A stretch of DNA of 64,000 nt, taken from contig OZ218962.1 of NCBI GenBank assembly GCA_965112735.1, positions 868,001 to 932,000 on the forward strand. Reading direction: 5' to 3'. Below are positions 173 to 26,444 of this stretch, piece after piece. The notes under the pieces are model-generated. The model made no database searches, was not told the DNA's origin, and saw only the letters and a program-made list of their open reading frames with translations. Source of the DNA: Phaeosaccion multiseriatum. Taxonomy: Eukaryota; Protista; Ochrophyta, other classes. Position 1 is the first letter of the stretch; the number at the start of each line of letters is the position of its first letter. A program made the position numbers and the translations under genes.

Positions 173-20313
<20,141 letters not shown>

Positions 20314-21012
20314 CCTCGCACCACACACAGCCATACAGAACCCTTCATACTTCGTTCACGTCAATAGACATGTGTGTGTATAACTTTGCCTGGCATGCGG
20401 TGGCCCCTCCGGCCCGCCCCTCGGGAGCACACTCCAAAAGCTGAGCAGACCCGAGGGGGCATGTCGCCCATTCATTGCCATAGGAGTAGTGGTCGTCGAT
20501 CCCTTCTCTCCCTTCTCCCGCGCGCGCGATCTGTGCGTCGCCCACGAGAAGAAAACAAATACGGCGTTGCCACCCTTCACATGACCGCAAAACATACCCC
20601 ATCGCTGCTGGTTAAGAGGATTGACTCCCGGACCATCCAAGCGCCGTATGTTTTGTCTTCTCGGGCTGCCCCAGGCGCACGGGCCTTGCGAGGTGACGCG
20701 CAGTGGGGTAGAAGACGAGGGGAGGAGGTGAAAAGTGGGACGGTGGGAGACAGACTTAGCCAGTGATGGAAGCATCATGACGCAGACCATCGCAGCAGAA
20801 TCTGAGGCCAAGCAATCGATGGAAGGAAAAAAGAAAGCTTATTATTGGATTAGTTTCATCTCAGCCTCCGGAGCCAAGCAATATGTACGATCCCTTGTCG
20901 CTCTTTCTTCCTACTGTGTCGCTCTTTCCCCCTACTCTGGCTATGCACGAAGCCCTGCCAAGAAGCTTGTTGACCAATGGTCGCTCTGGCTAGCGAGGTA
21001 GAAGTAGATCGC

Positions 21013-21898
21013 TCACCAGCCGCCATATTCGTGGCCTCTGCGCCATCCGTGCCCTCCACCCCATCCACCGTGCCGTCCACCGCCCCAGTAGCTATTGCCG
21101 GCCGGAGGTCGTCATTCGAAATGGAACGGAGGAGTAGGGCAGCGCAAACGATCCGGGCAGATGGATGAAGCGGCAGTCCATGATGGAGCGTAGTTGTAGC
21201 GGAGTGGAAAGGACGGCGGGCGGGGAAGGGACGAAGCACGAGCGGAGGGCGGGGTGGAAGATGATGTTGTCGGGGAAGGAAGCGCAGAGCCGTGGGAGGA
21301 GCGAGAGTGTGAGAGTGGAGAAGCAGAAAGGCAAGAGTCGGACGTGAGTAGTTGAGCGAGGGCCCTTCGGACATTGCTTGAACTTACAGCTTGCGCTCCT
21401 CCCCGTCCCTGTAGTCGACGTGAAGACCGGGCATGAAGTAGCCGAGTGGTGCCCGTCGAAGGTGAAGAGGGTCGAAAGGAAGAACGAAGCCGGAGCGGAG
21501 GCCAGAAGGAAGAAAAAAATGTTGAAAAGAAGGAAGGGAGGAGGAGCAAGCGATGGGACAGAAAAATCAGGGTTAACAGCTGAGATGGGGGGGGGGGTAG
21601 AAAGGAGATGCGCGGGAGCCCGAGACGGAACGCGAGTCGTGTAGGAGGGCCCAAGACCGAGTGTAGCTCACTGAGACGACAAGATATGGCTAAAGAAGGG
21701 GAGGATCTCGGCCGCCACGTGCACTGACACTTACAGCTTGTCCTTAAGCTCGTCCTTCTTGTCCCCAAGCTTCTCCTCGAGCTCGTCCTTCTTGTCTCCA
21801 AGCTTCTCCTTGAGCTCGTCAGGATCAGGGGCTTGAGCAGCGACGGAGAGGATCGCCACAAAGAGCAGGGCGAGAGTGAGGATGATGCGGCGAGTCAT
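21013..21898 (-). CDS. Small secreted prepropeptide (87 aa): signal peptide, 11-aa D/E/K repeats, EERKL, and a Gly/Trp/His/Arg-rich C-terminal peptide
   Basis: Exons 21898-21735, 21408-21388 (21 nt) and 21091-21013. Donors are GTAAGT, acceptors are CAG/TAG, and both introns are phase 2. Translation: MTRRIILTLALLFVAILSVAAQAPDPDELKEKLGDKKDELEEKLGDKKDELKDKLDGEERKLYWGGGRHGGWGGGHGWRRGHEYGGW. Absent from the ORF track. Confidence 0.8.
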
Positions 21899-22934
21899 GA
21901 TCTGCTCCACTCAAATGCTTGCGGCGAGTATCTCTGGTCCTGTTCAGTTTGCCGTATAGCGAGTATCTGAGCTCATGTGGCAAGAGTCGAATCCTTGGAG
22001 CCCTTTTCGTATCGTGTCACTGCAACTGGAAACCCTGTTTGGCTGACAAGAGGAGCATCGCGATAATGAAGGACAGATAAGTTGTGATGGTTAGGACATG
22101 CAGGACCGCATGCGTGCTGGGCGCGGCGACGCAAAGGCAGATGCCGGCAGCGCATTGCTCCACGAAGAAGATCGTAGGGCCCTGCGGCTGCTGTCAATTC
22201 CCGCACAGCTGCGATCGATGATTCACGCGTGCACGCCAGGGTCGCTCATAGCGGGCAGCACTCGCGCGGGCAGCTGGTCCACTTCTCGCTTTGGACCTGA
22301 GTGCGTGTCTCGACCAGGCTGTCATCCGCCTGCATGTGAAGCCAATTTGGAAGGAAGACACAGTCCCGAGTGTGGGTTGTCCCATGGAGGATGAGGACGG
22401 GGCAGCCGGGAAGGCAAAAGGGGGGAGGGCCAGAGCGACAAGCACAGGTGGAGGGCACGGCGACTGACTGGGTACAGGAAATGTGCGATACAATCGGCCC
22501 AAGGCTTGGAGTGAGAAGCTCTGTATCAAGAACGTGAGCCTGCCTTCTTCAAACGCTCGAAGCTCGGGAGCGCACGGATCAGCAGGGAGAGATTGCCCGA
22601 GATGCTGGCAATAGCATGACGAGGCCCTCAGTCAGGTCTGCAGAGCGCCAGAGCCCAACTCGGCACGATGTACTCACTTCGTTTCTCCTCTGACCTGAAG
22701 CTGAGCTTCTTCAACCAGTCATCTTAGACGCAAAGGCTGTGCCGCAGTGGCACCATGAGCCATAGCCCTACCCTCCCCCCGCACGCAAGCAATGCCAATG
22801 CGACATTCCCTCCGCCCGACGCTTGAGGGGTTTAGCTAGAAAAGTGAGCCACTGTGGACACTTACCAGTAGCTGCAATGACTTGATTCCCGCAGCTCTGC
22901 TCACGCAGAGTACAGGCTCATTGGCGAGCAGCGC

Positions 22935-24095
22935 TCAGTCCTCGCAGTCGCAGGGATGTCCGTTTGCATGCACCCACCGCTTAATCTCCTCGAAGGCGCC
23001 ACCCCTCTCAATGTCCCCAAAATCCATGCGTAGTATCTGCTCTGGGCACGAGAACCTGTCCCACCCACACAGAACTCTCTCCGATCGCAGCCACTGCAAA
23101 GTGGCCAGGCTCCCCCCGCAAACGGCATTGAAGCAAACCCCGCCGTCCCAATGGCACAGGTCGCGAGCGTTTGCATGCAGCCAGCGCAACACCTCCAGCT
23201 GTCCCTCACGCGCTGCACAGTAAGCCCCAAATCTCCATTTGCTGCCATCATCTGACCCTGCCGCTTCGCTGCCTTCCTCGTCCTCTGCTTTTTCCAGCTC
23301 AGGGCTGACCTTGGGGTGGGCCAGAAGCATCTCCAGCACACTGATGTGCCCACCCTGCACGGCCCCTTCCCAAACCGTGTGGTCGAAGGGGCTGTTTGCT
23401 TCATCTGACAGAAGCCATGCAAGCATACCCATGTCCCCCCGCCAAGCGGCTTCATAGCAAGTCATCGCGTCCCACGGACAAGGCCTCTTCCCAGCAGGGA
23501 GGGCAGTGGAGCAGATTCGTTTGAGCAGGCCCTGCTTGGCGGGTCGGTCTTCGGAGCGGAGCCACTTGAGAATACTGAGGCCGTGTTTGGCATTGCGCGC
23601 AGCCATTTGGCACACGCACTCGGTGCATCGGAGGAAGTCCCAGGGCCACACGAGGTGGAGGGCCTGGCAAATGCTCACGTCTCCCCATCGCACTGCAGCC
23701 ACCATCGTATTGCAGCTCAGGAGGCGGCCGCCCTGCATCGGCCCCTTGATCACCCACTCGACGCACTCGACGGACCCCACCACGCTGCGAAGACGGGTGG
23801 TCAAGGCGGGATGAGCGGCACTGTACAGCCTCCTCCAGTCCCTGCATACCCCCGCGACAAAGAGATGATGCCCCTCCCCTAGGATGCCCATGACCTTCGT
23901 CATCGCGTCTTGCTGAGCCAGGACATTTGTCCGGGCTGAAAGTCCCTCCTGGGCATTGCCCCTCAGAACCCTCCACCCTACTGCGGCGTGCAAGGCCCGG
24001 TGCCAGTTTCTCACGGTGTCCATGACCGACGCCATCACACCTTCCTCTCCTTCCGGAGCCGGTCGCACGCGCTTCCTCCCCCCCTGCTCAGCCAT
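22935..24095 (-). CDS. Intronless ankyrin-repeat-like protein of the L.vL.WL...gCPWd class (algal/giant-virus type) with an F-box-like N-terminal FVAxVCRxWR motif; copy 1
   Basis: Single ORF with repeats such as AARNAKHGLSILKWLR, CPWDAMTCYEAAWRGDMGMLAWL, AAREGQLEVLRWLHAN and GSLATLQWLRSE. ATG taken at 24095. Confidence 0.75.
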   Translation of the reverse strand: MAEQGGRKRVRPAPEGEEGVMASVMDTVRNWHRALHAAVGWRVLRGNAQEGLSARTNVLAQQDAMTKVMGILGEGHHLFVAGVCRDWRRLYSAAHPALTTRLRSVVGSVECVEWVIKGPMQGGRLLSCNTMVAAVRWGDVSICQALHLVWPWDFLRCTECVCQMAARNAKHGLSILKWLRSEDRPAKQGLLKRICSTALPAGKRPCPWDAMTCYEAAWRGDMGMLAWLLSDEANSPFDHTVWEGAVQGGHISVLEMLLAHPKVSPELEKAEDEEGSEAAGSDDGSKWRFGAYCAAREGQLEVLRWLHANARDLCHWDGGVCFNAVCGGSLATLQWLRSERVLCGWDRFSCPEQILRMDFGDIERGGAFEEIKRWVHANGHPCDCED

Positions 24096-24820
24096 ATCCT
24101 CTAGCGATGCCTCCGTAAAAGATTGAAGCAAGGAGGCTATTAGCCGCGCTAAGCTCTGTGCAGCTGCTGCTGTTGCCGCAGGAATGCGCAGCTACGTGCT
24201 GGAGTAGCGCGGCTCGGCGGCAGCTATGCTTGTCTTCAGACAGAGCGCGGCGCTAACAGGTGTGCGAAGAGCAAGGAGAGGAGTTTCCCTTGGCAGCGGC
24301 GGCCAGTTACATTTGCTGTGTGGACTTGGGTCTGGGAAAGTGGGCTCGCTTCTCAATTACCTTCATTTAGACCATACACTTGATTAAATACACCCGCTCA
24401 TTGCTACCTCGGCTTGGGGCAGGAGGAGACCGATTCGAAAGGAGCCCATCCCCCCGCGGCACGGCCCCCGCCCATGGCACATCTCTGCACCACAGCCGCC
24501 ACGGGACCTCAAGGGACAAGGTAAGAGCAAGCACAATAAATTAGGCCCACCGGCCGGTCTTCGAGGGAGTGAGGGCTCCTCCCCTCCCCCCTCCTACGGC
24601 CGCATCATACTCACGCACGCCTCACTGTTGCCGAAAAGCGCGCCCTCCTCAGTCACGCTTGGCCCCCCAGGCAAGCAAGGCGGCCTTCCCACCGCCTGGC
24701 GCCTGGGAGGTTGACAAGCGAATCAATCACTGTCGATGCTCACCACCAGCTGAAATGACTTCATTCAAGCACACTCACAGGCGTATTCCGCTTCTCGATG
24801 GGCGGAGAAGCGAGCGGCGC

Positions 24821-25817
24821 TCAGTCCTCGCAGTCGCAAGGGTGCCCGTTAGCGTGCACCCACCGCTTGATCTCCTCGAAGGTGCCGTCCTTCTCCATAT
24901 CTTCCATCCCGGCATTGAGGAGCACCTGCTCTGGGCACGAGAGCCCGTCCCACTCACACACGACGTCCTCCGACCGCAGCCACTGTAACATGGCCAAGCT
25001 TTTAGCTTCACGGACGGCATACTCACACACCTCGCTGTCCCAGTCGCAGAGGTCGCGAGCCGTTGGCATGCAGCCAGCGCAGCACCTCCAACCTGTTCCC
25101 GAGCGCGGCGGCGTAAGCCCCCGCTCGCCACCCTCGCCCTGGCTGCCCCGCTTCCAATGAAGCTCGCACCTTGGGACAACTCAGAAGCGCTTCCAGCACA
25201 TTGATGTGCCCGGCCTCTGCAGCCCCCAGCCACATGCTGTATGCGAAGGGGGCGCCCGCATCGTCCGACAGTAGCCATGCGAGCATTTCCACTCTCCCTT
25301 GCCGCGCAGCTTCGTGGCACACGCGATTGCTCCATGGGCACGGCGGCTTGTCGGAGAGCGCGTCCGATCGGAGCCACTTGAGAATGCTCAGGCCATGCTT
25401 GGCATTCCTGGCCGCAGCGCAACAAACATACGCGTCGCGCTTACAGCCGTGGCCATCGAGGGCCCTGCACACGCTCACATCTCCATACTCGGCCGCGGCG
25501 ACAAAGGTCCAAGTGCTGAGCGGATACTGAGCCTCTCTGATGGCCCAGTTGAGGCACTCCACAGACCCTATTACGCTTCGGTGAGTGGTGCTCCGCGCGG
25601 GGTGAGCGGCGCTGTACAGTCTTCTCCAATCGATGCTCACTTCCGCGACGAAGATGTATTGCCCCTCACCCACAATACCCATGACTGTCCTCATCGTGTC
25701 CTCCAGCATCAGCACCTCCTCGCGAGGACATCTCCCCAGAGCCGACTCAGAAGCACCGGCCTCCGCCTGTTGGGCAGCGCGGCCCAGAAGCATGTCCAAC
25801 AACCGTAGCGGGGCCAT
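24821..25817 (-). pseudogene. Intronless ankyrin-repeat-like protein, copy 2, interrupted by a 1-nt insertion near 25060 (pseudogene or sequencing error)
   Basis: Paralogous to 22935-24095 along its length, with the same C-terminus EIKRWVHANGHPCDCED. Copy 1 reads CAT GCA AAC GCT CGC GAC; copy 2 reads CAT GCC AAC G GCT CGC GAC. This splits it into ORFs 25023-25904 and 24821-25069. Confidence 0.65.
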
Positions 25818-26444
25818 TTTGCGACCCGCACCTCTCAACGTCGTGAAAGAGGAACACACATCACGAGCGGTGTGCGGGGGAAGCGCGGTCGAGGTTACAT
25901 ACATGAGGAGCGAGAGGGCTCTGCCCTGCGCCGACTATTATTTAGTTTTAACTCCCTCCCGAACCCTGGAACCTTTTTTCTTTGTATCACCAACGTGGAA
26001 AGGTGTACACGCACCACAGCCACACGTCACGTCTGTGTGTGCTGTGGCGGCCTAGCTGTGGTGCCAACCGTGGAAGACAGAGCCGCCCCTCTGTTCGGTT
26101 GCAGCAGCTCTGCCACCAGGCGCCCGTTGCTGCTCACAAAAATCATATTCTATTTGTTAATTTATTGCTTGTGAACGCATTAAGACCCAATCACTACCAC
26201 GACACCGCCCTGCGCACGAGTTGCCTACGCAACTCCTCAGTCCTCCAGGTCGTCGTTGGTCACCTCCTCCTCCCCGTCCGCCTCCTCTGAACCAACGAGA
26301 CAGGCTGCTGCTTGCTCATTTGCTTGGCTCTTCTGCTCTGCTCTGCGCAATGGAGAGCGTACCTCTGTCCCTGCCGCACGGCCGCTTCCATCGCACACTT
26401 CTTGCCCGGGAGAAGCATCCACCTGCCTATCCCTGCCCCTGAGT

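Follow-up and report, generated by a model that had tools for sequence, protein, structure and literature searches.

The minus strand at positions 21013 to 21898 of the window raises the question of whether a small gene spread over three short exons encodes a secreted precursor and, if so, which peptide is released from it and what role such a peptide might play. The window, i.e., the whole stretch of 64,000 nucleotides that was analysed, spans C13:868001-932000 in a genome of 67.1 Mb and 22 contigs; since this genome harbours at least 50 light-harvesting-protein matches, the host is a photosynthetic eukaryote, an alga. The features of the proposed gene are as follows:

21898-21735, minus strand: exon 1, 164 nt (54 codons plus CT), with the ATG at 21898 and the donor AAGCT/GTAAGT
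21830-21898, minus strand: initiator codon and predicted signal peptide, covering residues 1-23 (a basic M-T-R-R, a hydrophobic core of 15 residues and A-Q-A)
21735-21820, minus strand: 33-nt tandem repeat, 2.6 copies (TRF: 90% matches, score 144), encoding D-E-L-K-E-K-L-G-D-K-K units
21409-21734, minus strand: intron 1, 326 nt, GTAAGT...CTACAG, sense strand 71% pyrimidine
21408-21388, minus strand: exon 2, a micro-exon of 21 nt encoding D-G-E-E-R-K plus parts of two Leu codons, with the donor AAGCT/GTAAGT
21092-21387, minus strand: intron 2, 296 nt, GTAAGT...AATAG, sense strand 69% pyrimidine
21091-21013, minus strand: exon 3, the terminal exon, with the last base of Leu62, 25 codons and the TGA at 21015-21013

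When the minus strand was read from 20800 to 22100, the coordinates, splice sites and frame that an earlier, sequence-only reading had put forward were matched base by base. The joined reading frame of 264 nt (87 codons plus the stop) is continuous through both GT..AG introns, which are in phase 2 and lie within a Leu codon each (junction codons CT/G and CT/C). Pyrimidines account for 69-71% of the sense strand in the introns and 33-48% in the exons. From its sequence features, the small three-exon gene is apparently real. It is plausible that standard gene callers miss it; the ORF at 21910-21731 ends at a TAA within the first donor. As the length of exon 2 is a multiple of three and the exon lies between two phase-2 introns, its skipping would preserve the frame. 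Downstream, ~170 nt past the stop, AATAATAAG is found at window positions 20838-20846; this possible polyadenylation signal is kept in the 3' flank of the paralogue described below.

The predicted product opens with a signal peptide of the classic n/h/c layout, the core of which has a mean Kyte-Doolittle hydropathy of 3.05; the AF2 model places a helix at residues 2-20. The hydrophobic leader proposed earlier is thus present, although it had been given 21 residues, whereas the likely signal-peptidase site, placed by the -3/-1 rule only, falls after A-Q-A at residue 23. Exon 1 continues with P-D-P and the 11-residue units. Three such repeats had been described, and the units can indeed be recognised, but the third shares only 7 of its 11 residues with the first two and has D-G-E-E as its last four where they have G-D-K-K. 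The pro-region as a whole comprises 39 residues (16 acidic and 11 basic, net charge -5) and is modelled by AF2, from the single sequence, as one helix (residues 26-53, pLDDT 71-88). A strongly amphipathic, lipid-binding helix was considered for this region and dropped, as the hydrophobic moment of the repeats is modest (0.24-0.26 per residue).

Exon 2 holds both candidate cleavage sites, E-E-R and R-K-L. The tail had been said to occupy an exon of its own, and the translation of exon 3 is exactly the 25-residue peptide in question, with 12 Gly, 4 Trp, 3 Arg, 3 His, 2 Tyr and 1 Glu (net charge +2), and with neither Lys nor Ser. The sequence hence bears out the proposed prepropeptide layout (signal peptide, charged spacer up to R-K-L, and a Gly/aromatic peptide with its own exon), and the precursor probably releases the 25-residue Gly/Trp peptide.

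The inverted paralogue and its pattern of substitution

A look for paralogues had been suggested as a check on the gene, and a genome search returned one close exon-1 paralogue at C13:848358, 41 kb away and on the other strand, with an exon-1 protein that is 94% identical. In this copy the start codon, all four splice sites, the frame and the stop are retained. The two copies are part of an inverted segmental duplication of ~5.8 kb (window ~20445-26285 versus C13:844491-849888), the flanks of which are 90-98% identical between the copies. Exon 1 aligns with 94.5% identity and no gaps, intron 1 with 88.9% identity and 35 gap columns, intron 2 with 93.2% identity and 52 gap columns, and exon 3 with 83.5% identity and a single 3-nt indel, which keeps the frame and leaves the stop in the same place. 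In exon 2, 20 of the 21 nucleotides are identical; the lone change replaces Leu by His at the junction codon. The junction of the paralogue consequently reads RKH/CWGGG, while E-E-R is kept in both copies. The peptide of the paralogue is a 26-mer with 14 Gly, 6 Trp and a net charge of -1. Since the paralogue has R-K-H and a net charge of -1 in its peptide, neither the Leu of RxL nor the positive charge is conserved.

The substitutions between the copies are unevenly distributed. Exon 1 carries nine, apportioned as 5.5 synonymous and 3.5 non-synonymous (pN/pS 0.19, binomial P ~0.006), a pattern that points to purifying selection. In exon 3, none of the 36 sites at Gly positions 1-2 and in Trp codons is substituted, as against 10 of 27 at the other nine codons (Fisher P 6.6e-5). 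This second proportion is higher than the rate of 0.079 measured for the non-coding DNA as a pool (P 2e-5), with the non-scaffold positions of the tail changing ~5x faster than the introns; the alignment of exon 3 near the indel is uncertain, and in the first 19 codons, which precede the indel and align unambiguously, 5 of 18 sites are changed (P 0.011). A conserved prepro part together with a fixed scaffold and fast positions in between constitutes a coding pattern and not a neutral one. Furthermore, as the second genomic copy keeps the whole structure with substitutions of the coding type, the gene structure is more than chance. Because the 5.8-kb segment is a young duplication, all of these selection tests draw on one pair and few substitutions, and the fast change of the tail could alternatively reflect gene conversion or a mutation bias in the G-rich tract.

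Certain other features of the duplicated segment are worth recording. The paralogue has a 42-nt tandem duplication (L002:2024-2086) comprising the micro-exon plus 21 nt from the start of the next intron; it yields two identical donors, the second of which would lead to an in-frame TAA. The segment also bears two intronless ankyrin/F-box-like genes (the window ORF at 24131-22935 encodes Ank repeats), and its identity is mosaic, amounting to 87% in the peptide-gene part and 97-98% in the ankyrin part. Just downstream of the end of the segment, a microsatellite run of (TC)n, (TG)n and (CTG)10 occupies window positions 20046-20193.

A leader-sharing family in the genome

Relatives of the gene were sought in databases with the exons used singly as queries and not with the joined 87-residue product. 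A word search with exon 1 against 5.8 billion proteins, in databases that may omit the annotation of this genome, gave no match. Exhaustive HMMER comparison of exon 1 with 1.84 billion representatives returned three weak matches (E 1e-6 to 5e-4), all of which were rejected as repeat or coiled-coil look-alikes. P0003, a JGI metagenome protein of 159 aa named YhcB-like, carries six G-K-K-T-D-E-L-N-D-K-L units after a membrane anchor and is 58% identical to the pro-region over 37 residues (E 5e-4); it has neither the Gly/Trp tail nor the common leader and is probably a case of convergent 11-mer periodicity. A leader-profile scan of metagenome contigs matched once, to a signal peptide on a bacterial periplasmic binding protein; this match was discarded as chance. 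Pfam returned nothing above cut-off (the best match, Tom37_C, scored 16 bits against a cut-off of 22.5 bits, and the tail exon gave nothing), the ESM Atlas score of 0.81 is at chance level, and Rfam returned nothing for window positions 20000-23000 on both strands. Searching the host genome with the tail exon retrieved the self-match only, this query being too short and simple to retrieve even the known paralogue. The gene is assigned to no described family, as the comparisons made beyond its own genome established no membership. In these searches no homologue was found outside the genome, and the family appears in this genome only; the in-silico case for a real, orphan, selected gene is good.

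Within the genome, the leader identifies a family of at least 15 members. Searched as a single sequence it reached E 0.02, and a profile that included the query recovered 15 members at E < 2e-4, distributed over the following branches:

Branch A, contig C13: two copies, the window gene and its paralogue
Branch B, contig C2: six copies, leader ending A-R-K-L
Branch B', contig C2: one copy, leader ending A-R-S-L
Branch C, contig C10: one copy
Branch D, contig C2: five copies, leader ending A-R-E-L-Q-E

Aligned with its counterparts in branches B, B' and C, the window leader shows 59-70% identity, and 17 columns are invariant (branch D is absent from this alignment); the motif common to the family is M-T-R..L-T-L..A-L-L-F-V-A-x-L-S... 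At the DNA level, only the leader exon and one upstream element align between branches, the latter being:

21996-22007, minus strand: the 12-mer AAAAGGGCTCCA, 97 nt before the ATG, a candidate shared promoter box

This 12-mer occurs 20 times in the genome (67 Mb), as compared to 11 times for a reversed-pattern control. Eleven of the 20 occurrences sit 90-100 nt before family ATGs, and both C13 copies have it; downstream of the other nine, no signal-peptide ORF was found. We infer a regulatory role for the element.

The family resemblance extends to the junction before the peptide. In branch B, the leader exon is followed by a micro-exon that ends in R-K-L and has its donor inside the Leu codon, and the terminal exon opens with C-TAC-CAC-TGG-GGC-GGA, giving RKL/YHWGGW; this terminal exon is homologous to window exon 3 at the acceptor and over the first codons. 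Branch B' passes directly from R-S-L to the peptide (RSL/YGRGYY), and branch A reads RKL/YWGGG. As branches A, B and B' share a phase-2 intron in the Leu codon of R-x-L/Tyr, ahead of a Gly/aromatic peptide, this arrangement can be regarded as a family trait. The C13 pair has in common with the C2 and C10 branches the leader-exon homology, the 12-mer and a terminal exon beginning with Tyr and then Trp/Gly. Three features are confined to the pair: a 33-nt repeat inserted into the leader exon, a micro-exon encoding E-E-R-K-L, and a peptide that contains His and Arg, lacks Lys and spaces its W-G-G-G irregularly. The sister branches encode (W-G-G)n-K and Gly/Tyr/Arg/Lys peptides. On sequence grounds, the C13 pair is a further branch of the leader-sharing family.

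Every intron of branches A and B is in phase 2, and the internal micro-exons measure 21 and 48 nt (the latter at L017:1818-1865); exon skipping or shuffling among family members would therefore keep the frame. In the signal-peptide codons (window 21830-21898 compared with L017, L018 and L021), synonymous divergence between branches is just 0.26-0.30, and pN/pS is 0.41-0.60, which is not significant. Such low synonymous divergence of the leader beside DNA that does not align suggests constraint at the DNA level, gene conversion or recent exon exchange. On C2, peptide genes belonging to branches B, B' and D have relatives of the ankyrin genes of the duplicated segment as neighbours, at the following positions:

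C2:2100875-2101792: ankyrin relative
C2:2102292-2102367: ankyrin relative
C2:2106015-2106190: ankyrin relative
C2:2215764-2216507: ankyrin relative

In view of this adjacency, an ankyrin gene plus a peptide gene may form a recurring unit of duplication.

Proposed cleavage of the precursor and possible role of the peptide

The explanation favoured here, to which we assign a probability of about 0.5 as a whole, is that the locus encodes a lineage-specific small secreted prepropeptide, cleaved at an RXL/EER site to yield a Gly/Trp peptide with an outward-facing role. The signal peptide would bring the product into the ER and would be cut off after A-Q-A (residue 23). Import into the complex plastids of algae typically involves an aromatic residue or Leu at position +1; the residue at +1 here is Pro, neither aromatic nor Leu, from which we infer the secretory route. 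The charged pro-region would then carry, and possibly mask, the sticky C-terminal tail, and a secretory-pathway endoprotease would cut after Leu62 of R-K-L to release the 25-residue peptide or, alternatively, after Arg60 of E-E-R to release one of 27 residues. The cut after Leu62 is favoured because the R-x-L/Tyr junction is found family-wide, while the site at Arg60 stays a candidate since the paralogue has lost the Leu and retains E-E-R. In the final and weakest step, the peptide would present a fixed Gly/Trp scaffold with fast-evolving positions in between and may act in defence or surface interaction.

Precedents for such cleavage exist among stramenopiles. In diatoms, many biosilica proteins have a short domain ending in R-x-L after the signal peptide, which is removed proteolytically, although the RXL protease has not been identified (PMC5525289). 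In Phytophthora, cleavage takes place before secretion, after the Leu in the case of RXLR and after the Arg in that of EER (PMC11754927). The resemblance of R-K-L to the diatom motif, already pointed out in the sequence-only reading, holds, as the layout of the window gene agrees with the described 'RXL domain' (PMC5525289) and R-x-L/Tyr recurs in the sister branches. By analogy, the precursor would work like a classic prepropeptide with an RXL-type pro-domain.

With respect to the role of the released peptide, divergence of the variable positions at a rate above that of the introns favours an outward-facing function in defence or at the surface (antimicrobial or microbe-binding) over a purely structural one. 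Such a function would also be in keeping with the small size, the secretion, the multi-copy clusters and the fast change outside the scaffold. A simple cationic-antimicrobial reading is weakened by the R-K-H paralogue, in view of its net charge of -1.

Alternatively, the peptide could be a building block or glue of the cell covering, which the pro-region keeps soluble until release and which afterwards undergoes self-association, coacervation or cross-linking via Trp/Tyr/His, possibly with metal ions. Glycine-rich wall and adhesive proteins typically have a Gly/aromatic/Lys-like composition, as is seen in the (W-G-G)n-K and Gly/Tyr/Arg/Lys peptides of the sister branches. An invariant Gly/Trp scaffold with a charge that changes between +2 and -1 suits a material rather than a cationic membrane-active peptide, and the multi-copy arrays on C2 suggest that the product is needed in bulk. 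Nevertheless, 25 residues are very short for a structural unit, and structural proteins are not expected to outpace introns at their variable positions. Overall, the charge switch and the compositions of the sister branches would fit a wall, coat or glue equally well, and this role is a tentative possibility that we rate only somewhat below defence.

The defence reading, for its part, can be extended to a co-regulated arsenal of secreted defence peptides, governed by the box at ~-95, with a fixed Gly/aromatic scaffold, positively selected variable positions and an R-x-L/E-E-R code that would be ancestral to the stramenopiles and common to diatom silaffins and oomycete RXLR effectors; in this full form it appears doubtful.

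It is unlikely that the gene does not work at all, i.e., that it represents a decaying or never-expressed offshoot of the C2 family with a frame that is open because the duplication is recent. Consistent with decay, the databases searched hold no such protein, the segmental duplication is young (introns and flanks are likewise 89-98% identical), and one copy has lost the Leu of RxL and acquired the 42-nt duplication. However, synonymous changes are over-represented in exon 1 (P ~0.006), and none of the 36 constrained Gly/Trp sites carries a substitution (Fisher P 6.6e-5). Moreover, the sole exonic indel is of 3 nt as against 35 and 52 gap columns in the introns, and neither copy has lost its splice sites or the upstream 12-mer.

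There is very little likelihood that the pro-region is never cut from the tail, so that the whole 64-residue secreted protein works, as a charged helix with a Gly/Trp anchor, or that an unspliced message gives a 55-residue product. The uncut protein would agree with a paralogue devoid of the RxL Leu and with a repeat region that is itself under purifying selection and modelled as one long helix; the unspliced product would agree with the closure of the ORF at 21910-21731 by the TAA of the donor. Against an uncut product, the R-x-L/Tyr junction before the Gly/aromatic part is kept in three branches, which argues for a cleavage code, and the second candidate site, E-E-R, is kept in both copies. 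A silica-forming precursor of the diatom silaffin/cingulin type is the most improbable proposal, for although diatom biosilica proteins, too, combine a signal peptide with a short RXL-terminated domain (PMC5525289) and the Trp-rich and Tyr-rich branches recall W- and Y-type cingulins (PMC9650480), a search of the 67-Mb genome for the silicon transporter PF03842 gave no match, the peptide is devoid of Lys and Ser, and the product is similar in sequence to no protein in the databases searched.

If the favoured reading holds and the gene is expressed, the alga possesses a processed Gly/aromatic peptide family with a common leader and promoter box, and the R-x-L cleavage code of diatom wall proteins and oomycete effectors would extend to a third stramenopile setting. 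To our knowledge, hardly any small secreted peptides have been described from algae, since genes with micro-exons are passed over by gene callers. A short, abundant and easily tagged substrate of this kind would aid in finding the diatom RXL protease, and the peptides could themselves serve as antimicrobial, metal-binding or self-assembling materials. Should the arsenal reading prove true, such an alga would yield its first described family of gene-encoded antimicrobial peptides.

Comparison with known systems

Among peptides of similar composition, shepherin I and armadillidin, from plants and arthropods respectively, are Gly-rich with His/aromatic residues and show metal-enhanced activity (PMC10698721, PMC5031766). 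Unlike the window peptide, they have regular G-G-H or G-G-G-F-H repeats, no Trp scaffold and other precursors. The best-studied compositional analogues, the Gly/Tyr peptides of the nematode NLP/CNC families, are clustered, fast-evolving and antifungal (PMC2453101). The NLP-29/CNC (caenacin) peptides resemble the window peptide in being small, secreted, Gly/aromatic products of diversifying clusters, and the window peptide also ends in Y-G-G-W; this likeness is compositional only, as the lineage and the gene structure are unrelated, and it is for the nematode peptides that antifungal activity is shown.

The diatom RXL biosilica proteins (silaffins, cingulins and silicanin-1) share with the window gene a domain ending in R-x-L after the signal peptide. 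In the window gene, 39 residues ending in R-K-L follow the 23-residue signal, while the paralogue has R-K-H in this place. Both are low-complexity, aromatic-rich products, although the window product is much smaller, lacks clusters of Lys (KXXK) and Ser, and has no sequence similarity to the diatom proteins. The host differs from diatoms in that its genome gave no silicon-transporter match (PF03842 being the family searched).

The RXLR-EER leaders of oomycetes likewise belong to stramenopile secretory proteins with R-x-L and E-E-R soon after the signal peptide. They are defined by an R-x-L-R no more than ~40 residues away from the signal peptide, with E-E-R after it, whereas the window gene reads E-E-R-K-L-Y. 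Here E-E-R comes first and overlaps with the R-K-L, the Leu is followed by Tyr and not Arg, there is no effector domain, and the host is an alga that, to current knowledge, is free-living. By analogy, the window gene could provide a possible link between the cleavage codes of diatoms and oomycetes.
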